From Monocercomonoides exilis PA203 (taxonomy: Eukaryota > Protista > Preaxostyla), in contig LSRY02000022.1 of the NCBI GenBank assembly GCA_001643675.2, positions 1,240,001 to 1,304,000 of the forward strand: a stretch of 64,000 nucleotides of DNA, read 5' to 3'. Position 1 is the first letter of the stretch. Every line of letters begins with the position of its first letter. Below, piece by piece: positions 6,301 to 39,357 of the stretch. Both the position numbers and the translations under genes were made by a program. The notes below the pieces were generated by a model. The model made no database searches, was not told the origin of the DNA, and saw nothing but the letters and a program-made list of their open reading frames with translations.

Positions 6301-9300
6301 TTGGGCAGCACCAGGAGAGAGTGGCGAATGTGGCGAAGAAGCTTTTCAGCGCAATGAGGATGAAGTCGGCTGCTGCTTCTGCTGCTTCTCGATCGCCAAA
6401 GGGAGGGTATATTGCGAGTAATCCGAATGCATCATTAGCTCCTTTGTCTTCTTATGCGCTTTCACCTTCTGCCAATCCATATTCAATTTCTTCTTCTTCT
6501 TCTTCTTCTTCTCACTTTTCTCGCTTCTCCTCCTTCCCTTCTGCCTCTTCTCTCTTTTCTGCCTCTGCCCTCTCCTTCTCTCGCATGCTCTGTTCTGTTG
6601 TGGAGTTCAAAGTCACCACTGACCCTGCTGTTATATCAAGCTCAAAGAATTACTTTCCCATTTTGGATGATTGTGCGAATATTCGTCTGTTTAGCCAGAA
6701 AATGGATGGGAAAAAGACGAATGATTCATCTTCGTCTGCTTCACATGCACCTTCTGATTCAGTAATCTCTTTAAGCAACATTATTTCTTCAGCGTCTTCA
6801 TCCTCTTCTTCTGCTTCTTCCGCATCCAATTCATCTTCTTCCTCTTCCTCCTCTTCCTCTTCTTCTTCCTCTTCTTCTTCCTCCTCTTCCTCTCCTCTCC
6901 CCCATGTTCCCTATGCCTCTGTCACCCTCTCCACCATTGCAGGTGAAGTAAGTCTCCTCACTTTGTGTGGCATCGACCGCTCATATGAGCACAACCCCCA
7001 TCTCCATCCATCTCAAAAGCATCTTCTGTCTCTTCTTCCAGAGTACTTCATCTTCTGCCTCAACCTCATGCGTGATTTGTGTATTGGACAGCACTCCGCG
7101 AATATTTCCCATGTTAATCGCATTCTCCCTCCTCATGTGCTCCTCCACATCATCAGAAGCAGCTTCATCCCCCTCAAAATTCGTGCGGCTGCTTTGTCTC
7201 TCTTCCGCCACTCGTTCCTGCTGGCACCAGAGAGAGAGCCAGTCAAATGGACATGGATTAAGATATTCAGAGAAGAACACACATTAAATGGAGATGATGA
7301 TGAAGATGGCAGCAGAACACTGATGAGGAATACAAGATCAGCTGTTGGTTCGAAAGCGCTTTCTTCATCAAATTCTTCTTCTTCTTCTTCATCATCAAAC
7401 AATGAAAGAAGTGAAAATAACGATGAAGACGAAGAAGAAGAAGATGCCGAGTTGAAGACAGAGGTGCTGAAGGAGTGTGTGATGCACCAGTTTCTGCTGT
7501 GGGTGCGTGGGATGATGAGCAGAATATCCAACCCTATGATAGACAACACACTCCAATACAATCCAAACAATGACGCATTCAATGATGGAAGCAATGGTGA
7601 ATTGACTGCAGGGCAGACGCCGAAGACGAGGAGGAGGCACAGAAGATGCAGTTCAGTTGCCTCGACTGCCTCGGCCAGAGTGGAAGACACGCCACTCGCA
7701 AAGGCGCTGTTGAAGCAGACACAAAAGGAGCATTCAACAGAAATGGACAGATTGGTGGGGAAGTCGCAAACACTCAGAAGTTACATTGAATCGCGTGTTC
7801 CTGCTGCATTTCCGCCGTATTGTACTCCTTCGAATGTGTCAGCAGTGATGAATGTGCTGAACAAAGCGAGGGATGAAGAGGCAGGGCTGGCAGTGGGTGC
7901 GAGTGTGGAGCAGGCGAATGGAGGAAGCAATCAAACAAGTGATAACAGCAATAACGGTAGTAGCAGCAGCAGTAACATTCAGAATGGAGGAGAAAGAAGA
8001 AGAGAAGCAAATGAACAGCTTGTGAAGTGTGAGGACAACAGAGAAATAAGCACAGAAGACGATTTTGTGTATTCTGAGGCAACAATCCACCACTCAGCAA
8101 ATGAGCTGTTACGTTCTCCAGAACACCTCATCTTGGTGAAAGAAGTGATTCACTGTCTGTATGTGTTATTATTGACTAAGGTTATTTCCTTTGATGCATA
8201 TGAGAGTGAGATCAGGAGTGGGGTGGCGACGATTATGGTGCTGTCACCCCTGCTGGATGAGCACTTCTACACACTCACACTGAACAAGCAGGCACTCAAT
8301 GCATATGGTGCAGACAGGACAAAGTACAAGAGCATCGTCTATTCCATTGCAGACTCGGCGGGGGCTGTCACACGCAACACATTGTCATTGGCTGCTGACA
8401 GGCTGCACAGAACACCTTCTCTTCACTACACGTTTGAGGCGCTGCAGATGCTGGTTGTGTCATTCTTGCTGTTGGGGCAGGCGACGGTGTGCAGGTCGAA
8501 GGTGGATCTGATTTGGAGGCTGTTTGTGAGTGGGATAGGGAATGCGTGGAAGATGAGGGTGAAGATGATGAACGGGATGGAGGAGAATAAAATGTTGATG
8601 CAATCATCATCACCATCATCATCATCTTCTTCTTCTTCTTCTTCTATATCATCTACTGATAATAATAATAATAATAATAATTCAGGTTCTGAACTGAAAC
8701 GCAGAAGGATAGCAAAGACGTTGACAGATGCTGACTTCAGGAATATTCTGCAACATGCAGCTGATCCCTCTCCAAATACAAGCAATTCACAAGGTTTATC
8801 ATCAAATTCATCAACAAAAATTGCAAAGTCCAATCAATCTTCAAAGAATTCATCATCAAATTCATCATCGTCTTCCTCGTCTTCCTCTTCCTCTTCCTCT
8901 TTTTCAACCGCCCTCTCCCTCACCTCCAATGACTTCACCCACACACGTCTTGTCTCATCCCTCCGGCGCAGCATCGACACACCCCCCTTCATCACCAACC
9001 GCTGCCAGGACTTCACCTTCCTCTCTCTCAACCACCTCGGCATCAACAAGCGAAGACTGCAGTTTTACGTGTCATCCCTCAACAGCAACGCGGCTGTGGT
9101 GAACATGCTGAGGAACCTATCAGTCACCAGCAATGGAGACCTGGGGGAGAAAGAGAGGCAGCTGAAGAGGACGATCTGCTTCCTCCGGATGGTCATGCAG
9201 AGGCCTCCGACGAAGGAGAACAGGCAGCTCGCATCGCTGCTCCTGCTGAATGTGTGCGACTTGTTTGAATTCGAGCCAGAAATAGAGTCATACACACGAT

Positions 9301-12300
9301 GCATCCACAGGCAGAACGAAGAGAGCGAACGATCGAAAGCGCCAGAGAGGTTGCTGTCGCCTGCTGATTCACTCGCTCCTGTCATGTCTTCACACACAAA
9401 CAGCAGAGAAACCAAACAGAGCCAACAACCTCTTCGTCCGTTTCCCATCCACCGGATCGAATTGAAGCCGTTTGAGAAAGGGAAAGGGAAGAAGTTGGGC
9501 GATGATCAGGACTTAGCTGATTCGTGCATGTTGTACACACGCACACCCAAGAGAACACACAACATGATCACAGCAAGGATCAAGGGATTGACACTGGGGC
9601 TGTACCACATTGTCATTCAGCATGTGCAATTTCTTGCTTCTTCGGTGGATGACATTCTTCATCAGGTGTCGAGATTCTCACCTGTTCCACTTCAACTGCC
9701 ATCACTCACGAATAATATTCTGAACAGAGTGTCTTCTTCTTCAAATTCTTCTTCTTCTTCTGATATTAGCAACACTTCATCATCATCATCATCATCTTAT
9801 TCTTCTTCTTCTTCTTCTTCTTCTTCTTCTTCTTCTTCTTCTTCTTCTCCCATCAACACCTCAAGATCCACACCTTCTTCTTCCTCTTCCTCTTCCTCTT
9901 CCTCTTCCTCTTCCTCTTCAACCAACCCAGTCAATCTTCACACCAACCATGTCCAGCTTCCCTCTCTCCACATTCTCCACTTGTCTGCTTCATTGGATAT
10001 CCCCCACCTTCTCATCATGTTCATCCAGCAGCTCCCTCGCATCAAGCCCAACCGCCCCCTCTTCTCCCTCCTCTTCCTCATCTCTGCCATGTTTGTGAAT
10101 GCACACAACAGAGAGAACGAAACAACCCTTCCCTTGCTGTACCTGCCCATCCTCTCCACCATCTTCTCTGAGATTTCTCTGAGTTCTGTGCCTGCCATGC
10201 TATTGCTGATAGCTCTGTTGGGCTGTAAGGAGTTCAGAGAAACGCTGAGTCCAGGACACGTGGCGACGATTGTGGGGCTGGTGGAGGTGTCAGCAAAGGC
10301 GAGGGAGACAGAAGCAGCTCAGAGGGCGAGGATGAGAGGGAAGAGGGGTTCTTCGCTGAATGAGATGGAGATGGAGATGAGGAAGAGGATGGCGAATACA
10401 GTGAGGGGAAAGGAGGAGGAGGAGGAAGATGAGAAGAGGAAGATGATGGTAGATAATGCTTTGGAGAGGAGAAGAGAAGAAACTAAATCTGTTGTTCCTT
10501 CTTCTTCATCTTCATCCACCCCTTTTCCATCACCTTTTCCTTCTCGTTTTCCTTCTCCCTCTCCTTATCCCTCTCAATCATCTTCTCCTTCTCCTTCTTC
10601 CTTCCGCATTGCAGAAGCAGCATCTCCTCCTCTTCGAATGCAGACACCCTTTGACGATGCAATGGGCGGGACAAACCTTCAAAGAAGCACACCTTCTTCA
10701 CGAATAGCAACTCCTGCCCTCTTCCAAAATCCTCTTTTCTCTTCTTCTTCTTCTTCTTCTTCCTCATCTTCCATTTCTTCTTCTGTTTCTGCTTCTCCAA
10801 CTGCAATGTATCCAACTTCTCCCACAAATGTGAGGAAAAATGAAGCAAACTTTGCAACTGTAACACCAGCCAGACCAGTTATCATATCACCATCAACTGA
10901 AATAAACACTTTATCTCAACCATCATCATCAACAACAGCATCTTCTTCTTCTTCTTCCTCTTCTCTCACCTTCCTCACTGCCAACACTCCCTCCGAGTAC
11001 TTTTCATGTGTCCAGTCAAACTTCCTCCCTCTTCGCGACCCGCCTTTCTTCGGAGTCTCTCTCTTCTGCGAGCTTCTTTCTTCCTGCTGTGGCAGCCCCA
11101 ACACAGCTGCCCCTCGTTCACTTCTTCTTCCAATTGAGAGAAATCAGCAGATTGTAAGGAATACCATCTCCAACCCTGTGGATGTGTTCACAGTGAGGTA
11201 TGAGGAGGAGCAGGTGAATGATATTTTGGAGAGGATATGGCTGTTGAGGAGGCAGATGATGAAGAGGGAGAGGATGAGGGAGGAGGCGATGAAGGCGTAT
11301 GTGTTGCAGCATCCGAATGCGAAACACAAGCTGATGCAGATGAAGGCAGAGGGAGAAAGAAGAAAGTTTCCTGTGCTGTCTTCAATGACATTCTCCAGAG
11401 ACAAATCAAAGTATCGGCAGATGAAGGCAGCTGGAGTGGCTTATGCTGCCCCGTTTTCTTCTCTTTCTTCTTCTTCTTCTTCTTTTCCTTCTCCAAATGC
11501 ATTTAGTTCATCATCCTTTAATAATAATAATTCCAATAATATCAATGTGAATAATGATTTCCTTAGCATGAGCGCTGAGCTAAGCACAGAGCCTCCTCTC
11601 CTCCAACTCTTCCTGTATGCTTCTCCTCAATCTCTCTCTTCTTCTTCTTCTTCTTCTTTCTCTCAAATGAATTCCTTTGCCAATTCCTCCTCCTTCAGAC
11701 AAGAGAGCTTCTTTGCCAAGCCTTTGGCTGCGTGTCGCTTAGCCCGCCTTGTTCTGAATGATCTGAGTGCCCTCTATTCATTCATCGACCCTAACAGCAC
11801 TGTGGAGAAGGCAGATGCTGAGAGAATGGACCCTGCTCTGCTGCCACCCAAGCTGAGCATGTTGGGAGAAGGAGGGGAAGGAGGAGAAGAAGAGGCACAA
11901 CAGATCGCTTTTTCGCTGTTTCCGAGGAAGATTGTGGCGTCATTAGTGAATGATGTGGTGATTGACAGGAGGTTGGATAAATTACACAGAAACTTCCACT
12001 CACTGATTGAGGCATCAAGAGCGTTGGATGCAGAGACGGAGGAGTTTGGGAATGGAGGAGGAGGAAGAGGAGGAGAAGGAGATGAGGCTGGGAACAACGG
12101 AGGCAGCTCACCAATCTTCCCTCCTTCTCATCCGGGGACACACAAAAAGCACACAGCACTGGCAATGGCAAAGGCCAAAGCGAAAGCTGCAGCCATTGCC
12201 AAAGCGAAAGCCAAAGCGAAGGCGAAAGGAAGAACACTTTCAATCCAAACAGAGTCAGCTGTGATGGCAGAGATGGAGGAAGGAGAAGGAGAAGAACAAC

Positions 12301-15300
12301 ATTTGGCAATGGCTGCACAGGAAGTGCATTATGAACTGACAGAAGATGAGAAGGAGGAGCTGAGAAGAGAGAAAGAAGAGTGGGAGGCAGAGAGTGAAAG
12401 GTATCTGCAGCAGCTGATCTACCTTCATCGCACACTCCTTCGCCATCTGTCCACTTTATTGACAGACGCTGTCTCACACATCAACTTCATCAACGCCCTC
12501 ACCCGCAGAGATGCCACACCGGATGAAGTGCTCTATGAGTCAGACGCCGATGCTGCCTCTTCTCCCCTCGTGCTTCTTCGGCAGATCGCTCCCTTGACTG
12601 ACATCACCCCCCTCCTGCTGAATCATTCGTCAGAGCTGCCTTATCCTTTCTTCTCTGCTGTGTGTTCTCTTTTGACGTCTGTTGTGCAGTCCACGTCGTT
12701 TGCGAGGATGCTGCCGTTGGAAAGGCAGAGCGTCACCCACATCGCCTGCTGGTGCTGCAAACAGTGCGAATTCTGTTCAGGTGCCCTTTGCGAGCTGATC
12801 GGCTTGTCAGCGGTGCCGATGCTGAGAAAGGCGTATGTGGCAATGAATCGTTCATCATCTGCAATGAATGGTGATGAAATGAGTGGGAATGAAATAGTGA
12901 AGAACTCAAAGACGAAGTCAAAGACGAAGAAAGGTGCGATGACAGCAGCACGCATCGAAGCAGCGAGGAGAGAAGGAGAAAGGAAGTTTGTTCAGCAGGT
13001 GGGCAAGTGGAAGGACGAGATTCTAACATCGCGTGTGACTGAGGTGCCTGTACTGTATCATTCCTTCAGACACGGCAGACTTATCAGGGCAAACACAGAA
13101 GAGTTGTTTGGAGTGCGGCAGAAGAAGATCAGCCTGGTGGAAGAGCTGTTCAACAAGTACTGTTCAGGCGATGACAGCAATGAAGACAACTTCGATTCTC
13201 CCAATGAGAGAAACTTTGATGGAAGCAGCAGTGTTTCTGCGCAGCTGCAGGCGTATTTCAATGAGCTGATGAATGTGGGCAAGACAGAATATCGTGTGGT
13301 GTATCTGCAGGAGCTGAAGCAGAGCTGTGCTGCTTCTTCTTCTGTAACTTCTCCTTCTCTTGCTTCTGCTTCTGATAGTTCTGATGGTTCTGGTGTTGTT
13401 TTCTCGAGTCCTACTCCTTCATCTTCATCTTCATCTTCATCATCATCTTCTTCTTCTTCATCCTCTTCCTCTTCCTCTTCAACCAACATCAGCATCACTC
13501 CATATTCCCAGAGGAGCCTTTCCAGTGCTGACTACGCATCCCACTCAAAAACAGGAACTGATCCTCCGCTGCTGATATCCAGGCACATTCTGAGTATGCT
13601 TCTTTCTCTTCTCTTTTCAGACCTCCTGCCGATGATGGCGCCGCTGTGTCAGCTGTTCATCCCGTTCGTTGAAGCACACTGGAAGAAGCAAGGGCAGCTG
13701 TTCTACTCATTTCTAGCGATGAAGACAGCGACGGAGATGAGGCAGAGGAGGAGGAAGCGGATGGAGAGGAAGAAGGCAGAAATAGCAGAGATGTTGGAGA
13801 AGCAATCAGCAGAAATCAAAAAGATGAAGATGAAGGGAAAGAAGCAGAGCAAGAATCAGAAGAGCACAAAGACTGGACTGAGCAAAGAAGAACTGCACCG
13901 TCTGTATGATGCAGAAGCGAGCAGGCAGTCGTTGGAGATGTATTCATACTTCTCACTCACTCTGCTTGACGAAGAGGAAGATTATCATTCGGATCCTGTT
14001 CAGTTAGAGGCAAGGCACAATGCTTTGCTGGATTTCTTGTATCCATCTGGCAATTTGGACAACATTTCCTTTAAGACAGCACAGCAGGTGAGGATGTCGA
14101 TGCTCTATGGGAAACCTCAGATGATCAACATGCTCATGAAAGGGATGAAGACTGGGCTGTTTCCTCTCACAACATCGCAGTCAAGTGGCTCTGGTTCTCC
14201 ATCGCCTACCCCCACGCCTTCACTCACACCCACTTCTTCTCCTTCTCCCACCCCCACTCCCGCTCCAACACCAACCCCGACTCCTTCTCTGCTAACACCT
14301 GCGCTTGTTGTGAAGGACAAGCCAAAGATTTTGAAGTCATCACTGGGCGATGTCAGCTGCATAGCCCACTCTCTCCGCTTTTGTGCTGCTGCCAGTGAAT
14401 CTTTGCTTCGCACGTCGTGTTCTCTGCTCTTCTTTGCCAAGATGCTAAACAGAGTCAATCCTTATCTCCCGTTCATCCCCTCTGGTGATGAAGACCTGCG
14501 CTTCTGCGGAGAAGACTTCTTCGTATCGAAAGCGATTGGCGTGTGGGAGCCTTCAAATAGACACAACAGACGGCAGCAGCAACAACAACAGCTTCAGTTA
14601 CAGCAACAAGAACAACAAGAGGGAAAGGGGAGTCGAAAGAGCAGAGAGGCAGAAGAGGAGAAGAGTGGAGTCATCGGAAAAGGGCAGATAAAGCAGAGGA
14701 GAGCCAATTTCATCACCGATCAGATGCTGTCTAACACAGAAGAAGTGAGAAAGATGATGCCGAGACGGATGATGGCGTTTGAGACGAGCGACGGCTGTGA
14801 AGAAATCTCATCAGCTGTCTCTGCCATCCGCCAAAGATTTGTCAATGTTAACTTGTCAAATGCCTCTTCCAGCAGTTCTTCTTCCTCCTCCTCAAAATCG
14901 TCATCTTCTTCTTCTTCCTCTTCTTCCCGTCGGTCAGCTGAGCTGTCGAGCATTGCCTCCTTTGAAGGAATAGGCTCCTTCTATTTTCTGCACCCAGAGC
15001 TGACAGAGAGGGTCATTGGCATCATTGGTGAAGACCCCACAGTGGCAGACAGCATCACGCAGATCATCTCGTTCTCTCTCAGAAATGCTCTTCATCTGCC
15101 TTTTGTGAGGCTGCCACTGGAGTTAGAGGAAGAAATGACTTTGTTTGCGAACGATGCTGCCTTGTTTCACAAGCTGAAGAGACATGTGGCGAAGAAGAAT
15201 GTGTTAGAGAGCAATAACAAGAATAAGATGAACAAGAATAAGAATATGAAAGTGAAGAACAATAAGAAGAGCAAGCAGTGTGGAGATAATGAAGCGATTG

Positions 15301-18300
15301 TTAAGCAGAGCAAAATTCATTCAGCCAACAAAATAGCACCATCTTCCACACCTTTGATGCTTATCCAGCAGTCAACCAATTATCAGCAGCGGCAGCAGCA
15401 GCAAGAAGAGCAGAAGAACAAAAAGCCCCTCACACAGCTCGTGTTTGAGAGCTGGATCCGCTTCACCATTGCGATCATTCCTGTCCTCTCGTCAGTCACT
15501 TCCTCCTCTCAGAAGAAGTCGATGTCGATTCTGCGTTCTCTCTCTTCTTCCCCTACTCGCCTCCTGCAGTACACATCTCTTCTTCCCAAACAGATCATCC
15601 AACATGAGTCTCCCCTTGCCCTGCACATCCTGTCAGCCATCAGAAACATCGTGATGAGCGAGCGCAGCCTCAACAGCAGAGACGCCCTGCGCATTCGGCT
15701 GATGGAATCGGGCTGTTTGTGGAGAGTGCTGTTGCAAGTGTCTTCTCCTCTGAAGCTGACTGCCATCTATGCAATGAAGGCGATGATCGTGCTGGTTGGA
15801 GGAAACCCAAATGCAGATGAGGAGGATGTGAGAGGGAGAGAGAGGGAGAGGGAAGGGGAGAGGATGAGAGTGGGAACGAAGACACAGCACTTGCAGAAGG
15901 GCGCAGGTACAAGTGTTAGTGAGAATGGCATTAATGGAACTGATGGGGATGAAGATGCAACAGTTCAGCTGTATCGAGACAGAAAGATAGCGAATTTTGC
16001 AGAGAGAGACACGCCTGTGCCGAAGGTGCTGAATTATGTGACACAGCTCATTGCTCTGCTGGCGAAGAAGGGGCTGTTTGTGTTTCCGCAGCACTTCTTC
16101 AGAGAGATAGACAGAATAAGCACACACTACAGCTCCCATGCGAAGTCGATGCGGCCGAGGAACGGACAAGGCGGGGGAGGGGCAAATGACAGGAGTGTTT
16201 ATGATGAATTGCTGGAGGACGATGAAGAGGAAGGATTTGCGTTTGATATATTCAGAATTGATGAGCTGACAGCTTATCAGAAGAGGCTGAAGAAGAAGAA
16301 GATGGCTAAGATAGAGAAGAGTGAAGCAGCACAAAAGAATAAAAGCAATCAAAAGGGCAGCCAAAACAACAATTCTGGTACAAAATCTTCTTCTTCTTCT
16401 TCTTCTTCTTCGAGTTCTAAGTCAAGCAGATCTTCCAAACAGAAGCACAGTTCATCATCATCTTCTTCTTCCTCTGCTTCCTCATCCTCTTCAATCAAGC
16501 AATCAGCTGCCATGCTGACTGAGAAGCAGCTGATAGAGCAGTACATCCGAGCGTCCCTCGCCTTCATCCACGTGCTCTGTTCAGGCACCAACCAGCTTCT
16601 TCAGGGCATGTTGGGGCCTGAAGGCCTGCTGCGCGTGGAGTCGCGTTTGCGGGCTGTTCCTCCTTCGCCTGCTGAGCAGATCTTCTCCAGCTGCCTCTCC
16701 TCTGTCGACATGGAAGAGCTCATCAAGAACCAGAAGGCAGCAGACAAGAAGAAAGCAGAGGAGATGAAGGCCAATCCGAACAATTCTTCAAAGGGAACTG
16801 CTGCTGTGTCGGTGAGTACGATGAATGGAGAGCAGACGTCCTTGCAGATTCGCTCTCCGCTCTCGAGCAATCTGACGACGTTTGTGCCGAAGAGCTTTGT
16901 GGAGGATCAGATTCTGAAGGCGAATGATGCGCTGGAGAAGATGTCGTATGTCATCAACTACACAAAGGAGACTGCGCTGCCACAGGCTGACGGGGCAGTC
17001 TCAACAGCAGATGGCGGGGAATCTGGATTGAGCACTTCATCTGCAAGCACTTCATCATCTGCTGCTTCTTCTTCCTCGAGTTCTTCGTCATCATCATCTT
17101 CTTCTATGAGTCTATCATCTGTCAACAACACATCATCATCATCATCATCTACTCCAAATGTGCAACTTGATGAGATTGACTTCGTTCTTCTTCTTCTTGT
17201 GCTCATTTCAGTCACTCTGCCCCGCCACCCGCGCTTTGGCTGGTCGCGCAGCTGCAACACAGCCATTGTGAGTGCTGCACTTTCTCTTCTGATTGACCTC
17301 GTGAGAGGACCCAACCTGGCCAACCAGCAGCACTTTGTGCAGTGTGGTGGGCTGAACATCCTCGCCCGCTTGTTCCGCCTGCCGATGAGTTTTGAGCTTC
17401 CCTTGCTGCATTCTGTGCGGAGGCTGGTGCTGCAGAGGGAGAGAGAGGCCGCGCAGAACCAGTTGCTGAGCGGGGCGTTTGGGACGCTCTCGTCGGGGAT
17501 AGACAAAGTGGTGGGGGTATTTTCGAAGGCGCTAAAAGTGGAGCAGAGTGGGTGTGTGCTGTCGATGAAGGACTACAGCACTTACGTCGTGCACAAGAAG
17601 AAATGGCCGCTTTCCTGTTTCTCTGCCTCTGACTGCTATCACAAGTACTTCTTCACAACAAACCACTCGTTTTTGAGCAAATTCAAGCTGGCGAGCTTCC
17701 ACGGCAAGACTGTTAAATCAGTCGTGTCTGAGCTGACAGACAGCCAAACAGGTGTGGCAGAGAGAGAAATCATGAGCAAGGCGTGCCTGCTCCTCAGGTG
17801 CATGATGGAAGGCGAGAAGTCGGAATCACTCTGTGTCTCCATCGGAGCCTCGCCTGTTCCCATTGCGCTGCAGCGGAAGATGCTGTCGTATCGCACTGCG
17901 ATTGACTATCTGAAGCAGAGTGACTCAACTGTCCTGTCAGCTCTTTCATCAGCTGCCTCGAAGACAGTCAACGCAGCCACGCTGGGACTCACAAAGGGTG
18001 CAAGCACGATGACTCCCAAGCAGATCGCGAAGATGATGGAGGAAGAGGCGCTGCCATTCTTTGTGGCATCGTCGACACTCCGATTCGGTGTGAGGAGGGC
18101 AGCAGTTTCATTGAAGATGGCGCCTGTGAATGCAGTCAGCGCAGAAATGTCTCGTTTGTTCAGCCCACTCTTGTTCCCGTCGTTTGCATCGCGGCTGGAC
18201 TTTGTGGAGGTGATGCGGTTTGACAGAGAATTGCCTTATTTGTCTGCGTTCTTCTTTGCCAGACACCCTGTCTCTTCGCTGGCGAGCAAGAAAGCACAGA

Positions 18301-20036
18301 AGAATGTGGTGAAGAAGGCGTGGGATGCGCCTGCTGGAGAAAGAATTGATGTGCTCCACACACAAATAGCAACATTGAATCAGACCGTCCTGCTGACAGA
18401 GAAGAAGAACAAGCTGAGTGTTGCTAAGCTCATCAAGTTCTTTGCACAGCCGTGGATATACATCACAACGAACTTCCTGTCCAATCTGTTTACTCTGGCA
18501 ATCAACGTGATGCTGCTGATTGACCCATTTCTGAACCAGTGGCGCGATCTGATCGACAAAATCAACACGATTCTGTCGCTGCTGAACTTCATCTTCATCG
18601 CCATCCGCTACGGCCTCTTCCTGCTGGGCAAGAACACCGACGTGTACTACGAACAGTGGGCGACGTATTGCACGAAGCAGCGGCAGCTTGTGGTTGGGTG
18701 GACACCGGAGCAGATGAACCCGGCGAAGAAGATGGCGGTGAAGCTGCGCTGTCTAATGTCTGGAAGGCACGTGTATCTCCTCGTGCTCTTCCTCATTGCG
18801 CTGCTCGGGTGGCTGTGGCAGAGGAAGCTGTACTGCTTCCTGCTGATTGACTTCTTCATCGACTCGCAGACGCTCAACACGATCATCCAGACATTCGGGA
18901 GAGGGTGGAAGATGTTCAGTGTCACGATCTTCACATCCATCATTGTCATGTTTTTCTTCGGCCTGGTGTTCTTCTTGTATCTGAAGGGGCTTGTGGCGGA
19001 GGAGTTGGATGACGAGCACAACCTCAACTACTGCTCTTCTCTTCTGTACTGCTTCTTCTTCATGATCTGGCAGAATCTGTCGCCAGGCGACAAGCTGAAC
19101 GAGATTCTAGGAGACCAAAACGTGTGGCTGGTGATATTGGAGGTGGTGGTGTTTATCATTTTCGGGGTGATGCTGATGAATGTGCTGCAGGGCATCATCA
19201 TCGACGGCTTTGCTGAGATGCGTGCGAGGAAAGACGCAGTGAAGGATGCGATGAACACCCAGTGTCTTGTGTGTGGGAAGATGTCTGATGAGTTCCAGAC
19301 GAAAGCGCTGCGAGATGCGAGCGATGAGGCTGCGAAAGGGATGCAGGAGATGATGCATGTGGACGATGGAGGAGGAGCAGCAAGATCAGATGGAGGAATG
19401 GCATCATCATCATCATCTTCTTCTTCTTCTTCTTCTTCTTCTTCTGTTGGTCCTGGCAAAGAAGATTCCAGAGGAGCTACTCAGCAAGATGGGAATGGTG
19501 GTTCATCTGCAACTGAAAAGAGCAATGGAGATGAGCAAATAGACAACGGAGAAGGCGAAGAGGAAGGTGCTGGGGCGAGTGTTGATGAAGAGAAGCAGAA
19601 GGGAGACTATGCAAACAGACTGTTTGAGTATCATACAGAGCACGAGCACAATCCTTTGTCGTACTTCCACTGCTATTGCGCAGTGATGAAGCTGAAGGAG
19701 CAGGAAATGACAGGAACGGAGCGGTTTCTGCGTCTTGTTTACACGCACTCAGAGATTGACCCAGTGAATGTGTATCCGCTGAACCGCTCTCTGACGCTGG
19801 AGGAGGATGTGGCAGACATTCAGGAAGACGCCGACAAGCTGAAAACAATGGCAGACAATCAGACAGCACTCAAAATGAGCACTGAGAAGATGAGCGACAC
19901 GGAAATACATTTCAACGGGCTGATTGCATCGCTGGGGCTGACAACTGAAAAACTTTCTTCGCTCAATCATTCTGTTGCCGAAATCACAGACTCAATCAAA
20001 TCGACCAAGCTGATTGTCTCAAATGCCCCCAGTTAA
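330..20036 (+). CDS. Giant inositol 1,4,5-trisphosphate receptor / ryanodine receptor family channel (~6472 aa; exons 330-450, 522-646, 716-854, 914-1069, 1159-20036)
   Basis: Four GT-AG introns (451-521, 647-715, 855-913, 1070-1158) join in frame to the 6267-aa ORF. The spliced N-terminus has IP3R suppressor-domain-like motifs: PLNFGDLISV, VHYGTTISLRSFYEKKYL, EIGDPVNTGDTIYL, TPWIIQRF. Further motifs: MIR-like WKDTFLIRHFVSGLYL; RIH-like LRFLSSLC, LNLMRDLCIG, IPLKIRAAALSLF; RIH-associated FIHVLCSGTNQLLQ and LIDLVRGPNLANQ; a C-terminal multi-TM channel with GIIIDGFAEMR; and a C2H2 signature CLVC...FEYHTEHEHNPLSY. Confidence 0.9.
2261..2318 (+). repeat. (TCT)n microsatellite encoding poly-Ser (one of many such tracts in the channel gene)
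   Basis: Uninterrupted TCT run of about 19 units; dozens of similar TCT/TCA/TCC tracts occur between 1600 and 19450. Confidence 0.9.
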
Positions 20037-21090
20037 TTCATTGTTTTTATTGTATTTTATCTTGTTTTAATTTAATTTAATTTATTTTTTATTTCGGATA
20101 AGATCTTAATTTGAATTTGATTTTCTTGGAATGTTTGTTTTTTTGAGAGAAGTTTTTTGCTTAAAAAGTATTCAATTCTTCAAAATGGATTGTTTGAAAA
20201 GTTTTTGTTATTAACAAATTCAGATAAATGAATTTTTTAAGAAATTTTTTTGTATTTTATTTTTTTTTATATCATCTTCTTTTTGAATTCAATTTTTTTT
20301 TTCCTGATATCTTTTTTGTGAAAAAGTTATGTTTCAGTTTTCTTTTTAAGTTTATTGCTGTTTGTCAAACCTCTGAAATCTAATGATAATCGATGTAAAG
20401 CATCACTTTATTAGTGTGAGTGTTTTATAATGTTTTTGTTTCCTAAATATTTTCTATCATTAGTTTTTGTTTTTATCCTTACAATAAATCATATTTGCAT
20501 CATGCAGATCTGAAGGCTGTCACATCATTCTTTTCATTTCAGATTCATTTAACATGAATTCTTTTCATCTTTATGTGTTCTAAGAGTTACACCTTATGAT
20601 ACTGTTTGATAAAGTAGTTATGAAATTCTTGCGAAAATTATTCAATCAATAAGAAAATATGAAAAATAATAAATGTTTGCTTGCCAATATCTTTCAATTA
20701 TTCAAATGAACGATTCAAAGTTTATTAAAAACTTTATTTGCTTTAAGTGAATCGCATCAAATTCAATAGAGCAAGTGAAATTTTCTTTTATGTGTGAAAA
20801 AACAACTTTTGTCATTTTTTTTGTTTGCCAAATGTTCATATTCGTAATTATTTTTTTGATTTTCAATTTTTTTAGAACCTTGAATCCTTAATAATTTTTT
20901 AAAGAATATTTTTTTATTAATTTTCATCCTCCTCCCCTCTCACCCTCATTTTCCTTTCTATTTAATGCACAACTTATTATTTATTATGTTTCACAAAAAT
21001 TGCTCAAATGCCAAAATAAATGAAAATATAATACAAAACCAAAAAATAGACAAAAATATAGGGTATGACTAAATTCTGTTGTGAATTCTT

Positions 21091-21411
21091 CTACAATGTA
21101 TTGTAGAATGTGTGTCCAACTCCCATCTTCTTTTTGCAGCAGGCGCAAGCCCATTCTCCTGCCTCTGCAATGGAGCGTTGATTACTGATAACTGCACCTA
21201 AAAGTTTGCTTTGCGCAGTGGCAGAGTGTTTCTTTGATGGATGGAAATAGCATGAAATAATTCGTTCACCGTCAGAATATGAAATCCAAGTTCCGCCATC
21301 AGCAGACTGCTTTTGATAGTTTGTTCCTCCGTAAATAAATTTAAATGCTGTATTAAATAATTCGTTGACATCGACATTTACGTTCAGCTTAATTGCAACA
21401 CTTGTTTCCAT
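21091..21411 (-). CDS. Lactococcin 972 family bacteriocin-like protein (106 aa, no evident signal peptide)
   Basis: Compact intronless ORF in AT-rich DNA. Pattern GGTW...ISCYFHPSKKHSATA...AEAGEWACA...HTFYNT matches the Lcn972 mature-peptide pattern (GTW...YSxYxHxSKxHSAT...AGxWAxA...FYY). The ATG is at 21411; the ORF track starts one codon earlier at a GTG. Confidence 0.8.
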   Translation of the reverse strand: METSVAIKLNVNVDVNELFNTAFKFIYGGTNYQKQSADGGTWISYSDGERIISCYFHPSKKHSATAQSKLLGAVISNQRSIAEAGEWACACCKKKMGVGHTFYNTL

Positions 21412-21895
21412 CACGATAAATACAAGGATATTTTAATAATGGGTGTTATCAAAACACCCATAAGAATATTTTTTGGTTCATTTTTCTGTGCTATTTCATT
21501 TTAACAATAACAATAAAATAAGAGAAAAGGGTTGAAAAAGTCATTTTTAATGTGTCAGCATGTTGAAGCTTTGTTTTCAAATTTTTTGATTACTCAGATT
21601 TATTGTTTATTTTTAAAAAATGAACAATTTTCAGTGAAAAATTTGATTTTTGTTTCTTAAATTTCATTGATTTATGTAACATTTTTTAAATGATGAAAAA
21701 ATAAACAGACACGTTCATTTATTGATGTATATACTTTTTTATGTTTATTTTCTGAGACTATTTTCAAAATTTAACAAATTAGACCCGTTGCTGCTGAATT
21801 TTTTGTTTTTGTTAAAGATAGTGAAGTGTTAGTGTTTCATTTTATTTTTTGTTTTTGAATGTTTTCTGTGCTGCCATTCCTTAATTGCATCATTT

Positions 21896-21896
21896 T

Positions 21897-21948
<52 letters not shown>
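21896..21948 (+). repeat. (CTTT)n microsatellite
   Basis: About 13 tandem CTTT units. Confidence 0.9.
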
Positions 21949-22179
21949 TTTTGATGTTGTTCGAAAATTCTTGATATTTCAACTTTTGAATAAAATAAAA
22001 ATATCCAAAAATTATATTTTTCTGTTGATTGAGTTCTGAATTGATGAAATTATTGTTAAAAGAAAGTTTGAAATGAATTTAGAAACCAATCAAATTAGAA
22101 AATAACCCACAAAACAATCTGGTGGAAGAAAAAGAAATGAAGATGGAAATAAGCCAAATTTTTCATTAAAAACTTTCCT

Positions 22180-23592
22180 TTATAAAATAGAAGCGTAAAT
22201 TTTCTGAAAACTTGTGATGATATCTTCACATCCAATTTCTTCCATCTTTTGTAACACCTCTCTCTTCGTCTCCTCCCAACCAACTTCGCTGTATCCTTCA
22301 TCATCATTCTCTCTCAGTCTTCTGGAAAAAACACGATAAAACATCATGCAATCATATGTAATCATATCATCCGATGTGTTTTGCTGTATTTCCTCTAGAA
22401 ACAGATCAACAACTCCACACTTCCTCATTGCATCTATTCTGAAAATCTTCCAAGTTGAAATGAGCTGAAAAGCGCTGGTGAGCGATCTGTATATCTCTCT
22501 CTCGCTTTCTCTCATTGCTCTTGCCAGCTTGGCAAGATAACTGATCAGTTCAGCATATTCCTCTTTCCAAGACCTGAGATGCAGATAAAATGCCTCCACA
22601 GTTTTTATCCACTTCATCATTATTGTCTCCGCTTCATTCATTTGTCGAATTTCTTCTGTTTTTTCTTCTCTTTTCAGATTCACACATTTCGTCAGTTCTC
22701 CAAGTTCTCTTGCTGCGTCTCTAACAAAGTGCAGCTCGTTTATAACAACGTCATCCAAACTTCTATTTATGCGTGATTGATTAACCAATAACCCCCAAGC
22801 AGATTGATATGCAAGTCGTGTCAGATTGCGATGCTCCTGATGATATTTGATGATTTCTTTGATTTCATTCAAATACAGTTCTCTTTCAATTTCCTAATAT
22901 AAAAAGGAGAAAGAAACTCAAAAACTTTTAAAATGAAGCATAAAGTTCTTAAACATAATGGTCGTATATGCTACTCAAAGCAAGCAAAGCCATCTCCACT
23001 TCTTTTTGAATGTCTTTATCCTCCTTTCTGTTCAATGCGACCTTCAAAAGGCAAGGCACACAAATTGTCAGAAATTCTTTTGGCGGGTCACCCATTTGAT
23101 ATCTTGTGAAAAGAAAACATTCACAAAGATCCGCCAGATACTTCCCATTCTTCATTTCTTTTTTATTCTCTTCTTCCAAAATCATTCTCTTTATCCTTTC
23201 GCACAGCAAAGAATCGTTGTAGCCTTTTCGAGAAAAGTTTCTCAGATTCATCAAACGTCCTACCCCCTTTAGCAGCAATACAGTGCTTTCCTCTCCAAAT
23301 TTCTTTTCATCAATCATTTTATCGATTCTGTTGCATGCATCTTTTGCGAAAACTGAATAAAATTCGAACGAATTCATTTCCTCCACCAATCCTATCATCT
23401 TCTCGATTTTCTGCGTTTGCTCATTTTCCGAACAATGCTCCAACTCCATTACCATTTCTTCAGAATGCATCAAAAACAATATTTTTAGCTTCTCAAATAG
23501 GAAAAAAAACAAGAATTCATACTCGAAAACTGTTCGGTCACTTGAATTTCTTTAATCATACCAACACATTTATCATCTGATAGCATCTTCAT
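22180..23592 (-). CDS. Lineage-specific expanded family protein ('YHQEH/NLTRLAYQSAW' family), copy 1, 3 exons
   Basis: Exon 1 MKMLSDD...EQFS, intron with AAG acceptor, exon 2 KMVMELEHC...LADLCEC...EVEMALLALS, intron 22894-22954, exon 3 EIERELYLNEIKEIIKYHQEH...MEEIGCEDII. Confidence 0.75.
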
Positions 23593-23849
23593 TTCGTTTT
23601 TATGCATAAATGTTTTATCGAATTTCGAAGGAAAATTTTTCAGCCAACAGAAAAATCGATAAATATGAACTTCGATTACAATCTTTCAAAATGACAGTTT
23701 GAAAGTTACAATACCAATTAATATTTTGAAAATATAGATATGTATCAGATGCCACAACGATTCAATGACATTATGTTGTTAAATGATTAAGTGTAATTTC
23801 TTGAATTTTTCTTTTGATCAGACCAATTTATGGTTTTTTGTCAAAAGAA

Positions 23850-25070
23850 AAATTTCTGCTGAAATAAAGGAGGCTATTGTTTCTGAATAGTTCACCTGAT
23901 TGCAGTCATAATGCAGTTGAATACAAAATGAAAGAATTCTTTTAATAATTTCTTTGCCTTTTTTCAAAATTGTTTGAAAGGTTAGAAGATTCTGATGAAG
24001 AGAATAAAAAGAGAAAAGAAGAGAAAAGTCACATAAACTTTCTTGTTGATCTTTGTGATTGTGATGTTTCACTATATTCAAAATTCCAATTGTTATTGCT
24101 TTCGACATGTGGCTTTCTCTTCTGAAAGCTGCATTAAGCAAAGAGGAAAACGAGGATACTCAAGATGAAGCAAAAATGGCTTTTCTACCTTTTGTCGCAT
24201 CAATATTGTTTGGATTTGAACATTTCTATTTCACAAATGATATTATTTTTTTATTTTTCATTGTTTGATAAATAAAGTGGAATTAGAACTAACCTGGATG
24301 AAACCAAAGATATAATCCGATATCATCATGAGAATTACAACCTTCTAAAGCTTGTATATCAGAATGCTTTGCCGTTTATGATCTTCATGCTACCATAAAT
24401 AAAAATGCTATTCAGGTTGTTTTCAATAATATTCTTCTTTTGTCGAAGGAGGCAAAAAGAGATCAAGAAATGTTAACCAGAAGTGTTGCTTAAAAGAGAG
24501 GAAAATGAGAGGAGAAAGATAAAGAAAAGAATGAAGCGAATTTTTCAATGAGATAGAACCAAACACTTATTTTTTTCTTCGGCGTTAGCCAAAAGAGGAA
24601 CGAAGAGAATTGTGACTTTTTCAACAGCATTGTCCGAGTGCTTCGAGTGTCAAATGATGATAAAAAAATTTTTTCATTTCCCTTGTACACGACCTTTAAA
24701 AATTGCATCAGGAAATAGAGCTGTGATGATTGATGACTTGTTTTAAAGTGGAACAATTAATGTTATTTTGGAGGATATGTGGAGGCCAACATTGGATGAC
24801 ATGATAACATTTGGCAACTTAAAATTATTTAAGTCCATTTTATGGCGAGTGAAAGGAAAAAAGAAAGTTGGAATGGAAGAAGAAGAGGAAGAAATAATTG
24901 AAAAAATAAGAAAGAAAGACAATAAAAAGGAAGATATTTGAAAAGTTGGAAGAAGATGGATATGAAGACTGCGTTGTCAAATTTTTGAAGTTAGGTCTTA
25001 ATTATATGTTTGGAGATGACAATACAGTAATAACTATTGAAGATTTTTTATGCATCTGTAAAGCGAAGGC
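23850..25070 (+). pseudogene. Decayed copy of the YHQEH family
   Basis: Frame-broken fragments FLVDLCDC, LKAALSKEENEDTQDEAKMAFL, KDIIRYHHENYNLLKLVYQNAL and EEDGYEDCV lie in the expected order, with many stops and frameshifts. Confidence 0.65.
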
Positions 25071-26536
25071 TCATTTCGATTCCATTCCTTTTGTTGAAGT
25101 CACAGAAAAGCAGCAGCAGAAGAATGGAATGAAACGAAATGTCAATAGAGTCACAGAAGAGGCATATAACAGTAAATGAACAAACAAAGAGAAGAGAAGA
25201 GAGAATTACATGAGAGAAAATGTTTCAATCTGAAACAGCATCTTTGTCTGAGAAAAAAAGCACATCCAACTCAAATTGTGGATTCTTCATTTATTTCAGT
25301 CTGCCTTCTCATTATCATCATCTGCTTCAACTTCTTCATTTCATCCTACCTTTCTCTCACAAAGCAACTATCAACATTTCACAATTAATCCATCTTCTTT
25401 TTCTTCTTTCTGTCTGTTTGTTAATGACATTGCACTTTTTATTGAATTCCATCAAATCTCATGAAGTTTTGAATAACCATTCACAACCTCATTTTGGGTG
25501 CATCATCCCTAAAACATTCACAATTTCAGATCTTCATCTTCCTCATCTTCATCACAATGAAAACAGTCATTTCACTTCATTTTTTGTGGTCATTGAAGAA
25601 GTGACACATATTTCAAATCCTTCACAAAAAGCCCTTCAACAAACATGAAAAACAACACAGGCAATTTATCTTCGCTCTTCTTCTTTCTCCTTTTTTCTCA
25701 GTTCCATCATCAATTTCGTGATCATCAAAGAAAGCATTTGATTTTCAATTAGAATTTTCTTCCTCTTTTGCATTTTGATAAAGCAACCTCATCCTTTCGA
25801 AATGCGTCAAAAAAATCATGTATTCTGAGGTAACTGGATTGTCAAAGAATGAAGGAAAAAAAAAGCAAATGAAGACATTTGGACAGAAAATAGCAACCTC
25901 TCAAGAGAATGTTGTTTCTTCGTCTTCACTTTTTGTGAAGCCTTCTTTTCTCTTGCTCATTTGGAATTGAGTGTGGACATCATGTTCTGAATGACTGTTT
26001 GGTGAGGCATGCAGGAAGGGAAAGAGAAGGTGGGGCTTTGGGAAAGATGGACATTTGTGGAATTGAAGCAGCAATTGGCCAGCCAGTTGACAAAAGAAAG
26101 TCTGATATTCTTTTCATTCACATTCGAATTTCAAATACTCTGATTGTGAAATGGTTTTTGTTTTGTCTTCTTCAGCTCAATGAGATCAAGTGAAAATTGG
26201 AAAAACAAGAGAAGAAAATGGTGGAACGAAAAAACTTCTCAAAAGACATTAATGAGGTTGCAGACGATAAATAAACTTTTTCAAGAGTTTTTATTTTTTT
26301 TTTTCACACAACTTTTGAGTTGATAAGTCCTTTGAGGAACATTAGTTTTGGAAGAAAATTGAAATTTTATCTTTTTTTCTATTTTTTGTTTCTTCATTTT
26401 GATGAAATGAAGTGGAATGAAAAACAAAATATCTTAAAAAATATCATTCAAATGAGCGTTTGTTTTCGCTCTTGTGAAATGATAAAAAAAAAAGAATAAA
26501 ATAAAACTGTCGAGTTACAAAATTCAATGCGTTTCT

Positions 26537-27950
26537 TCAAATAAACACAAAATAATTAAAAATGTTTGAAGATAATTCATAAAAATATTTTTGTTGAAGA
26601 AAATCAAATGTTTCATGAAAGCCAATGATGATATCTTCGTATCCTTCTTCTTCCATCTTTTCAAACACTTTCCTTTTCAACTCTTTTCTTTCCACTTCTT
26701 CCATTTCATCTTTCTTTTTATCTTTCAATTGAATGGAGATCAATTTAAAGAATTTCAAGCAATCACTTGTCTTCTCGTCATCAAGTGTTTGTTCCTGAAT
26801 CTCCTCCAAAAAGAGATCAACGATTCCTTCCTTCAAAAAAACTCCAATTTTCACAGTCTTGTTGAATGCTGCTCTTGAAAAAAGTTCAATGCATCTGGCC
26901 CGAAAGAGTGTGTATTTTTTCTTTGATGCTAGAAATAACTGAACAATGTTGTGAATAAGTTCAGCATATTCTTCATTCCACATTTCGCATTGACATAAGA
27001 ACTCTTCAATTGTTTCAAGCCATCTCATCGAAACATCCTCTTCTTTCATAACTTTTCCCACTTCAATTTTTTCTTTCTTTTTCAAATCTATGCTTTTCAT
27101 CAGCTCTTTCACTTCTCTTCTTGCCTCTCTCGCAAAATGCAGCTCATTCACTATTACCATTTCCAAACTTTGTTCAAAGAACAATCTTTTTATTAAAAAC
27201 TGCCACGCTGACTGATAAGCAAGTCGTGTCAGATTGTTGTGTTCCTGATGATATTTGATGATTTCTTTAATTTCAGTCAAAAACAGCTCCTGCTTTATTT
27301 TCTAATAAAAAAAGAGGGAAAATAAATTACAGCATAAAAATGAAATTGAAATGCTCATACAAATTCTACGATCATGCTCAAAATCAGAAAAATCATTTCC
27401 ACTTCCATTTGCGTTTCTTCATTCTCCTCTTTCTTCAATGCAGCTTTCAGAAGGCAAGGCACACAAACAGCTAGCAATTCTTCGTTAATACTGATGAAGC
27501 ATAACATAAGACTGCATTCGCAAAGATCAATAAGCAGCTTCTCGTTCTTTTCTTCTTTCTTCTTATTTTCTTCAATTATCATCCTCCCAAATCTTTTGCT
27601 CAATGAAGAATAATCAAATCCATCAATAAATAACTCATTCAGCACATTGCAATATCCGACATGCTTCGGCAGCAAAATTGCATTTTTTATTGACATTTTC
27701 TTTTCTTCAATCATTTTTTCTATTTTGTTGAATGTTTCTTCTGTGAAAACGGATTTGAATTCTTCTTTATTCATTCCATCAATCATTTTATTCATTTCAA
27801 CGATTTTTTGTTTCTGTTCAGCTTCAGTGATTTGTTCCAACTGTGAAAGTTTCTCTTTAAAAAAATTGAAAAATCAAAAAAGAAAAAAGAAGCATTTATT
27901 TTTAAAACCAACTATTTCTTATTACATTTTGCAAACCGTAAAATATTTGT
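26537..27950 (-). CDS. YHQEH family protein, copy 2 (start codon not resolved)
   Basis: Exon 2 (~27361-27855) KLSQLEQ...LIDLCEC...EVEM; intron ~27302-27360; exon 3 KIKQELFLTEIKEIIKYHQEH...EEEGYEDII, stop at 26537. Confidence 0.7.
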
Positions 27951-32356: not shown

Positions 32357-33927
32357 ATGGACGTGATTTCAACTTCCATTTTCCTCATTTCAACAAATTT
32401 GTTTGTTGCAAAAAAACTGACGGATGCAGTTCGAGCCAATGCCAGACGAACTGGAAAGCATGTCAGATGTTTCAGTTAGACATTTCATCATTTTGTTGTT
32501 GTTTTGTTTTTTTCAGAAAAGCTTGATGAGATTAAGCAATCTGAAGGTGATGCCCAAATTCAAAGCATTGAAGAGTTTTTTGCTCTTCTTGAGCAAGGTG
32601 ATAATGAAACTGTGGAATCCGCAATATCTTTAATGTTTTTTATTGAAATCAATGATGCAATTGAAAACGGGCACTTGCGTTTGGAGAATTCGATTTTATT
32701 GCTCAAGCGGATTGGCTTTTGCAAATTGTTGAACGTGTGTGGATATCTGAATACGACGAATGCACTTTACACAAAAGATTCGAAAAGTTGGTGCTGGAAG
32801 AAGAAAACAAGAAAGGGGAAAAGAACGAAAAGCTGATGATCGACCTTTGCGAATGCTTTCTTGCTTTGTTTGAAGGAATTCCAGACGCATCAAAGGATAC
32901 CGTTGCTGTTAGTGTCCGTTGTGTGATGAAGGCTGCAATGAGCAAAGAGAAGGATGAGAAAACTCAAAAAGAAGTGGAAATGGCCTTGCTTGCTTTGAGC
33001 AATGCAAAATATTTTGATGTGTGAAAGTTTGTTCATTGATTCAATAATTCGTTTGTTGGTTTGTTGTTTTTTGAATAGTGTGACAACAGGGTTCAATTCC
33101 TTGATGAAAGTGTTGAAATCATCAAATATCACCAGGAGCATCACAACCTCACCAGACTTGCGTATCAATCTGCTTGGTGTTCCATTGTTAATCAGGCAAG
33201 CAATGACGAGAAAATGGGGAAAACGGTTGAAAATGAACTGAATTTTTGCAAAGAGGCAGAAAGAGAATTGGATGAGCTGTTGAGGTGTGTGAATTGGAGG
33301 AAAAATGAAAAGGAGATAGATGAAAATTTTGAGGTTCGCCTGATGAAAAGATGGCTTCGAATAATCAACGCATATTTCTTCAATAACACTTTGAGAGGAG
33401 ATGAAGTTTTGAGGCTGATTGCATGTGTTGTGAGACTTTGTCAGACTGTTAAGAATTCGAGCAAAACAGCTTTTGGGAGTGGAATGTTCATTTTCCAAAA
33501 GATAATCAGAAGTTGCTTGGGAAACGTTGATTTTTTGCTGAGAAGGGGAGCAATGGATTATCTTTTTCAGGAGCTGATCCAACCGACATTCAGATGTGAC
33601 ACTTTTGGAAAGTGCATGCAGTTCTTTTCAGAGCTGTCAATTGCGTTGCACGGAGAAAAAGTCAACACGAATGTTGAAGATGATGAAAGTGAGGATTTGG
33701 ATGTGTTTGAATGGGAAGGCGAAGGTGGTCAAGATGATAAGTGTGATGAATACAATGATTGCGATGAAAATGGCAAAGAAATTGACAATGACGAAGTGAT
33801 AAATGCCGATGAAAATGAAAAACCCAATGGCACTGATGAGGCAAAGAAAATGTTGATAAAAAGAGTAATATTGAATAAGTCAGAGGAAGAAGGGGATGAA
33901 GATATTATCTTCAGCTTCGAAACTTAA
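32357..33927 (+). pseudogene. YHQEH family copy 3, frameshifted in exon 2, with an acidic insertion
   Basis: Family homology switches from ORF 32504 (LLLKRIGFCK) to ORF 32719 (LHKRFEK...IDLCEC) near 32740. Exon 3 (IIKYHQEHHNLTRLAYQSAW) continues into ORF 33214..33927. The frameshift could be a sequencing error. Confidence 0.6.
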
Positions 33928-37946: not shown

Positions 37947-39357
37947 ATGGATAATTTTGAAACGAGAGAATCTGGAATTGTGACACAATCGGCAAAGCGA
38001 AAGAAACCTTTTGAAAGTGTCATTTTTATTTATTTCACTTTCAATGCTTTTTCTTTTTGATTTATCTTTCAAACAAGTGTTGTTGAATGAACTTGAAAAG
38101 TGATCTTGTTCAAAGCAGATTTTTAAATTAGATGAGATTTGTAAATCACTTGAAGAAATAGATCGGAGCGAAATTAAAACGATTTTGAAAGATAAACTTT
38201 TAGAAAATATAGAAGCAATGATTGAAAAAAAGAAAATATCATTGAATAATGCTATCTTTTTGATGAAGCATATTGCATACAATGCATCATTGCAGGACAT
38301 ATTTCCTCCTTGTTTTAATGACTCGCATTTGTGTAAACGCTTTAAATTGATGATTATTGCAGAAGAGCAGAAAAAAGAAGGAATAAAAGGAAAACTTTTG
38401 ATTGATCTTTGTGAATGTTACCTTTTGCTTTCAAGTTTTGAAAACCATTCACCGGGAAAATTGATTTCTGTTTGTGTGAGTTGTCTTTTTAAAGTTGCAT
38501 TAAAGAAAGAGGAAAATGAGGAAATAAGAAAAGAAGTGGAAATAGCATTGCTTGCTTTGAGTCGAATACTTCAGGTTTTCATTTGATTAATTATTTGAGA
38601 TTTATTTTTGATGATTAATTATTCTTTAACACAGAAAATTGGCAAGGAGTTATATCTGAAAGAGATCAAAGAGATTATCAAGTATCATCAGGAACACAAT
38701 AATCTGACACGACTTGCATATCAGTCAGCTTGGCAGTTTTTGATAAACAGAAAGAATTCAGAAAGAGAATCGGAAGATTTTGTTGTGAATAAGTTGCAAT
38801 TTGTGCGAGAATTTACGGAAGAATTGGAAGAGCTCGCAAAGTTCGTAAATTTGAAGAAAAAGGAAAAGAAGGAGAAACGCTTCAAAGAAGAGAAAATCAT
38901 AAAGAGATGGTTTATTCCTCTTCAATATATCTGTCTCGGTTGTAACTTGAGATGCATCAAAGAGAAAGCTGAGCTGATAACATGCTTTGTCAGAATGTAC
39001 TGGGTAGGAAGTGCTTTTGAAAAAAGGATAAGCAGATTATGTGTGAATATTTTCGATGGAATGATAATTTCAGATGGTATTTCAAAATCAGTTTTTGTTG
39101 AATGCAAAGCGGTTGAATGCATTTTGTGCGAAATGTGTCAATCTTCATTGGACGACAACACAATTGCGCTATGCACTGAAATATTTGACACACTCTTGGA
39201 AAGAACGAACACATTTTCAAATGAAGTGAAGATTGAAGAATGGAAGAAGATGAAAAGAATGATGTTTGAAGTGATGGAAGAACGAGGCTTTCAAGATATT
39301 ATTTTGAGCTTTCATGAAACTCCAAAGTCCCTCTACGAAATAATTGGACGACGATAG
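37947..39357 (+). pseudogene. YHQEH family copy 4, 3 exons, single in-frame TGA at 38101
   Basis: Exons 37947-38016, 38078-38574 and 38635-39357 splice in frame: ...PFEMLLNELEK*SCSKQ...IDLCECY...IKEIIKYHQEHNNLTRLAYQSAW. Confidence 0.65.

Follow-up and report, generated by a model that had tools for sequence, protein, structure and literature searches.

A lactococcin 972-like gene on a eukaryotic contig

The window, a 64,000-nucleotide stretch of the Monocercomonoides exilis PA203 genome, corresponds to positions 1240001 to 1304000 of a 1.38-Mb contig (C17) in an assembly of 82.3 Mb in 101 contigs. On its minus strand, we found an open frame at window positions 21091 to 21414, with an ATG at 21411 and a stop codon at 21091 to 21093. 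The single-exon coding sequence (CDS) of the lactococcin 972 (Lcn972) family contained in this frame (21094 to 21411, with the last sense codon ending at 21094) was present in the ORF list, was matched by Pfam PF09683, and was covered by RNA contigs with 0 mismatches. It encodes a 106-aa product (METSVAIKLNVNVDVNELF...GHTFYNTL). A sequence-only reading of this locus had described an intronless ORF of this length, bearing GGTW, YFHPSKKHSAT, AGEWAxA, and FYN motifs and four cysteines, in what it supposed to be a gut protist. All of these points were borne out: the host is M. exilis, the RNA contigs show no splice joints, and the product contains GGTW, YFHPSKKHSAT, AGEWACA, and a C-terminal TFYNTL, together with C54, C89, C91, and C92. 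A conserved disulfide was considered and dropped, as none of the four cysteines is conserved in an alignment of 37 relatives (alignment A1).

The Lactococcin_972 domain (residues 38 to 103), a β-sandwich, lies at 21103 to 21300 on the minus strand, as placed by Pfam and by a six-frame search of the genome (C17:1261103-1261300), and contains the motifs H57-x4-H62-SAT and G85-x-W87-A88. It is preceded by an N-terminal module (residues 1 to 27; 21331 to 21411, minus strand) with the motif KLNVNVDVNELF and with a predicted strand (residues 3 to 7) and helix (residues 15 to 23). Downstream of the stop codon, a 435-nt RNA contig of run X1 places a 3′ UTR of at least 20961 to 21090 on the same strand. 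Upstream, an inverted repeat with perfect 9-bp arms, ATGGGTGTT-ttgat-AACACCCAT, is found at 21439 to 21461 (minus strand), 28 to 50 nt from the ATG and just past the furthest RNA contig end (21422). This repeat is the same in both copies of the gene (see below) and absent from the rest of the 82-Mb genome, and it is possibly a promoter or a gene-specific regulatory element. Further upstream, the intergenic spacer carries a (CTTT)n microsatellite of about 18 units at 21886 to 21958.

The product belongs to the lactococcin 972 family

The family had been proposed from motifs and their spacing, and the profile search agreed. The PF09683 model (Lactococcin_972) scored 37.2 bits against a gathering cut-off of 22 (E = 4.3e-9) and was matched in full (positions 1 to 62) at residues 38 to 103 of the product, with the same result in the six-frame genome search as in the protein search. 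The NCBIfam subfamily model TIGR01653, which takes in the bacterial leader region, fell short of its cut-off (27.6 versus 32.1 bits) and was matched at model positions 18 to 95 only. Searched with the sequence alone, the PDB gave 9hkj (E = 3.6e-4) and 2lgn (E = 0.21), which are formosin D, a "lactococcin 972 family bacteriocin," and lactococcin 972, respectively.

The fold prediction pointed to the same two structures. An AlphaFold2 model built from alignment A1 had a mean pLDDT of 94.4 and a pTM of 0.87, with no segment below 70, and Foldseek matched it to only two PDB entries at E ≤ 1e-3, namely, 9hkj and 2lgn. After realignment, 9hkj gave a Z score of 10.2 over model residues 28 to 106, and 2lgn gave a Z score of 8.0 (rmsd, 1.8 Å; 65 of 66 residues) over model residues 39 to 106; the next PDB entry, which is unrelated, gave 4.1. 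H57, H62, G85, W87, and A88 are invariant across alignment A1, and the H-x4-H-SAT and G-x-W-A motifs are likewise found in actinobacterial members of the family. The profile match, the fold, and the invariant residues together establish membership in the family, and we conclude that the ORF is almost certainly a true lactococcin 972-family gene, of bacterial origin and genuinely belonging to the host genome.

The gene is duplicated and kept under purifying selection

The gene lies between eukaryotic neighbors, as the sequence-only reading had stated. On one side, an uninterrupted 6267-aa ORF (1233 to 20036, plus strand) is extremely rich in poly-Ser and has an Ion_trans match (PF00520; E = 4.7e-7) in its last ~1300 residues; judged by this match, it is a putative giant cation channel. 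On the other side, there is a member (22180 to 23512, minus strand) of a multi-copy host family with no Pfam hit, paralogues of which are also found in the window at 24908 to 27822, 32927 to 33320, 38350 to 38889, and 49910 to 51590. No ABC-transporter or immunity genes, which had been reported missing, were found among these neighbors, i.e., the Ion_trans ORF and the host-family ORFs.

A 3.9-kb segment (20848 to 24779) that includes the Lcn972-family gene and the neighboring gene of the host multi-copy family is duplicated in inverted orientation at C17:738188-742088, with 92.5% identity over 3937 nt (blastn). The second copy of the gene is located at C17:741635-741832 on the opposite strand, 520 kb away, and its product, MONOS_18623, annotated with 106 aa and 95% identical, is the sole near-identical protein in the database. 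The location on a 1.38-Mb contig and an inverted duplication shared with a host-family gene confirm the eukaryotic chromosomal setting. The GC content of the CDS is 40%, compared with 38% for the adjacent host ORF and 23% for the intergenic flanks. Beside the paralogue but outside the duplicated block, a stretch at about 2090 to 2170 of locus L001 looks tRNA-like by eye (…GGTTCAATTCCCACTAGACCC…, reverse strand). It was not called as a tRNA by ARAGORN and may be a tRNA-derived repeat.

The two coding sequences differ at 12 nt in 11 codons, with 6 synonymous and 5 non-synonymous differences, and four of the five non-synonymous ones fall in residues 1 to 37. Their identity is 96%, versus 92.5% for the whole duplicated block, and the Nei-Gojobori dN/dS between them, calculated from these few changes, is 0.18 for the whole CDS and 0.13 within the domain. 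The Lcn972-family gene is kept under purifying selection.

The transcript is short and the product has no Sec leader

Expression was assessed with the assembled RNA contigs of four runs, all from a single 2024 study. The 435-nt contig of run X1 spans 20961 to 21395 with 0 mismatches, and other contigs end at 21412, 21417, and 21422, i.e., 1 to 11 nt upstream of the ATG, although such contigs give neither the strand nor the true ends of transcripts. Together, the contigs of the four runs cover 20961 to 21422 without a mismatch, and this RNA can be assigned to the window copy rather than to the paralogue because the match is exact and the paralogue differs at 12 CDS positions. RNA depth was zero in all four runs over the flanks at 20605 to 20846 and 21452 to 22056, and no splice joint or link to an upstream exon was seen in the contigs. 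The picture is that of a short unspliced transcript whose start lies a few bases before the ATG and whose 3′ UTR measures at least 130 nt, with no hidden exon that could encode a signal peptide. The sequence-only reading had also denied a Sec signal at the N terminus. In line with this, residues 1 to 38 contain no hydrophobic core of a signal peptide, with a top 9-residue Kyte-Doolittle mean of 1.31, and the 106-aa product has no Sec leader.

With the Lcn972 profile and fold, purifying selection, and transcription in hand, the proposal of a horizontally acquired and domesticated gene holds.

The N terminus is predicted to form a conserved module

A motif of the form h-N-h-N-h-D-V-N-x-L-L ("NxNxDVNxLL") is conserved through alignment A1 in the N-terminal part of the protein. 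A loose pattern of this module matched 47 of the 74 non-bacterial single-domain relatives; the module lies within 12 residues of the initiator Met in 39 of these 47 rows. In P0036, P0022, P0038 (Piromyces), and P0063, it comes after a signal peptide, which indicates that it is a part of the mature protein. The AlphaFold2 model gives the strand and helix of the module with pLDDT values of 90 to 94 over residues 1 to 30, and the solved bacterial structures align only after it, from model residue 28 (9hkj) or 39 (2lgn). The module was absent from the 8 actinobacterial members sampled, and all seven full-length ones have a Sec leader followed directly by the domain.

Residues 1 to 27 are thus conserved and not a signal peptide; they are predicted to be a confidently folded module, which is shared with relatives in both named and metagenomic eukaryotes. 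One may go further and propose that the module (the strand plus an amphipathic helix) is a eukaryote-specific addition to the mature protein, that it defines a pan-eukaryotic Lcn972 subfamily taking in oxymonads, parabasalids, anaerobic fungi, and numerous uncultured eukaryotes and going back to a single old transfer or to a few, and that it enables action without a leader or exit without Sec. We put this forward tentatively and consider it rather doubtful; if true, the module would be something new in both structure and function.

Named relatives are all eukaryotic

Word-index searching with this one protein returned the paralogue only. When 1.84 billion representatives were searched exhaustively with HMMER, on the other hand, 69 proteins reached E ≤ 1e-3. 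All relatives that bear names are eukaryotic: Streblomastix strix, Histomonas meleagridis, Trichomonas vaginalis, Piromyces sp. E2, and Polysphondylium violaceum, with the T. vaginalis proteins TVAG_266310 and TVAG_097990 and the H. meleagridis protein being retrieved by a profile built from the relatives. Three metagenomic contexts of relatives were likewise all eukaryotic, the surrounding genes encoding ankyrin, protein kinase, zf-MIZ, EMG1, and P4-ATPase proteins as well as a eukaryote-type glycogen debranching enzyme, a PCI proteasome-lid subunit, and UCH.

Tandem Lcn972 proteins with 2 to 5 domains and 335 to 701 aa (P0002, P0003, P0005, and P0012) were also found in eukaryotic contexts. 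P0002 lies at positions 760 to 2865 of a compact eukaryotic metagenome contig (L018), where it adjoins GH3, PCI proteasome-lid, and UCH genes. We found no mention of such a multi-domain architecture in the available text of two papers on eukaryotic Lcn972-like genes (PMC12612818 and PMC8106346).

A search with the eukaryote-type motif (alignment A2) found no close bacterial relative in species-representative genomes, and tblastn (E ≤ 1) found no match among 72,556 plasmids. A looser pattern (alignment A4) found one locus, in Amycolatopsis sp. NPDC049868 (L009, about 3971 to 4144). It is an open frame of 57 aa that scores 57.7 bits to PF09683 at model positions 14 to 62 only, with a stop just upstream and a long ORF on the opposite strand alongside; by these features, it looks like a 5′-truncated relic of an Lcn972-family gene. 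PF09683 was present in 8 of the 401 genomes in a sample of Actinomycetota centered on this locus.

A maximum-likelihood tree of 82 domain sequences (72 columns), in which the outgroup consisted of Actinomycetota only and Bacillota, including Lcn972 itself, were left out, was poorly resolved and grouped the M. exilis pair with the metagenomic P0004 rather than with Streblomastix. AU tests failed to reject oxymonad monophyly (P = 0.345) and likewise failed to reject one single split of bacteria from eukaryotes (P = 0.475). Given the poor resolution and these test results, we claim neither a donor lineage nor a count of transfers.

Possible functions of the M. exilis protein

In the explanation that we favor, the M. 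exilis gene is one of two paralogous, transcribed, and host-adapted descendants of a bacterial lactococcin 972-family gene, belonging to the laterally acquired "AMP-Lcn972" group of Metamonada. Its leaderless product is predicted to consist of the strand-helix module (residues 1 to 27) packed onto the Lcn972 β-sandwich (residues 28 to 106). By analogy with lactococcin 972, the lipid II binding of which is attributed to Martinez et al. 2008 in the available text of PMC12612818, the sandwich may bind lipid II of the bacteria that the protist eats or competes with and, in this way, may block their cell-wall and septum synthesis. The protein might reach the bacteria by an unconventional export route or when cells lyse, or it might act on bacteria within the cell. 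Having no peptidoglycan, the producer would need no immunity or ABC-transporter genes, which would explain why the gene stands alone. Taken as a whole, from descent and group membership to the two-part protein and the lipid II mechanism, we give this explanation a somewhat better than even chance, and to the antibacterial mechanism, drawn from Lcn972 homology, a roughly even one. In its favor, a T. gallinae gene of the group responds to E. coli in coculture, and recombinant Trichomonas domains impaired the growth of E. coli, the latter being an indirect sign (see below). The missing signal peptide, the lack of any sign of an upstream exon, the TIGR01653 score below the cut-off, and the identity to Lcn972 of only about 29% count against it.

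The main competitor is a repurposed domain, i.e., a leaderless cytosolic protein that has ceased to act on bacteria and binds another ligand of the protist itself, such as a polyprenyl-pyrophosphate-sugar like a dolichol-linked precursor, or has a structural or regulatory role. It would account for the missing signal peptide and for transcripts that do not reach upstream, as well as for the conserved extra N-terminal module, which is missing in the bacterial members sampled, and the prevalence of leaderless proteins among the eukaryote-type relatives (the 39 of 47 rows above) fits it too. However, P0036, P0022, P0038, and P0063, which are close relatives in the same clade, have clear signal peptides before the module, pointing to an extracellular role of the fold. 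A secreted Trichomonas gallinae member responds to bacteria, according to the available text of PMC12612818, and no alternative ligand is known. We therefore regard repurposing as unlikely, although it deserves more weight than the idea that an old transfer left the gene behind as a relic with no present function, evolving neutrally or decaying. The very small size of the gene, its lack of known partners, and its non-conserved cysteines would suit a relic, but both copies are intact, the dN/dS is low and the CDS better conserved than the block around it, the gene is transcribed between silent flanks, and all family-invariant residues are retained, making decay very improbable.

Least probable of all is bacterial contamination or a chimeric assembly join, which we consider virtually out of the question even though members of this Pfam family are typically bacterial. 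AT-rich intergenic DNA (23% GC) and host genes surround the gene in the middle of a 1.38-Mb contig, and its duplication took in a host-family gene as well. The closest relatives belong to other eukaryotes, with no close bacterial match in the species-representative genomes or plasmids searched. The contig setting, the inverted duplication, the match in GC content to the host gene, and the RNA cover make an artefact untenable, and even the relic and the artefact taken together are improbable.

Under the favored explanation, the locus is a further confirmed case of a bacterial weapon gene that a gut protist has adopted and retained, and it agrees with the laterally acquired anti-peptidoglycan toolkit already published for Metamonada. 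The added value is modest: the locus genuinely belongs to M. exilis, exists in duplicate, is transcribed, and is under selection, and its extension is predicted to be a folded module. The module sharpens the question of how leaderless eukaryotic Lcn972 proteins reach bacteria or whether they have another role.

Comparison with described systems

Bacterial Lcn972-type proteins are exported through Sec, and their genes lie next to those for ABC transporters or immunity. The M. exilis protein shares the β-sandwich and the YxHxxKxHSAT and GxWA motifs with lactococcin 972 (2lgn) and formosin D (9hkj), although its identity to them is only about 29 to 30%. Unlike the bacterial proteins, it is leaderless, has the extra N-terminal module and four cysteines, and is encoded by a solitary gene in a eukaryote.

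Lcn972-like "bacteriocins" have been described in anaerobic gut fungi (PMC8106346; PNAS 2021), which, like M. exilis, are eukaryotic gut microbes and for which horizontal transfer was likewise invoked in the available text. The fungal proteins, found by antiSMASH at relaxed thresholds, are reported there to be longer and to have signal peptides. In the P0038 protein of Piromyces sp. E2, we found the same N-terminal module as in M. exilis behind the signal peptide.

The closest described counterpart is "AMP-Lcn972," a part of the laterally acquired antibacterial toolkit of Trichomonas (PMC12612818; Mol Biol Evol 2025). According to the available text of that paper, each Trichomonas species has two paralogues, for most of which no signal peptide is predicted; coculture with Escherichia coli upregulated one T. 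gallinae gene, most E. coli that expressed the recombinant domains grew defectively after induction, and Actinomycetota are tabulated among the bacterial BLAST hits to a Trichomonas AMP. M. exilis and Streblomastix strix are listed as carriers, with an M. exilis accession in a supplementary table. The gene is therefore of an already described kind, in a species already named, and the statement in the sequence-only reading that no such system had been described, which both this paper and the gut-fungal one contradict, was wrong. That reading is partly supported overall, its central idea being correct.

The M. exilis gene resembles the metamonad AMP-Lcn972 genes, as presented in the available text of PMC12612818, in encoding a protein of about 100 aa with a laterally acquired C-terminal Lac972/PF09683 domain, in having two paralogues per species, and in the H-x4-H-SAT motif and the mostly unpredicted signal peptide. 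Its own product is short and has the Lac972 domain at the C terminus, and the profile of its relatives retrieves the Trichomonas members. On the other hand, the M. exilis pair is not placed beside trichomonad sequences in our poorly resolved tree, and the M. exilis genes themselves are not analyzed in the text available to us of PMC12612818. The N-terminal extensions are interpreted there as "likely to contain SP," with no N-terminal motif described in that available text, and it is this reading of extensions as signal peptides that would make the module new. What is novel here is the conserved N-terminal module and the leaderless state: where the published account sees likely signal peptides, residues 1 to 27 of the M. 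exilis protein are predicted to form a folded module.
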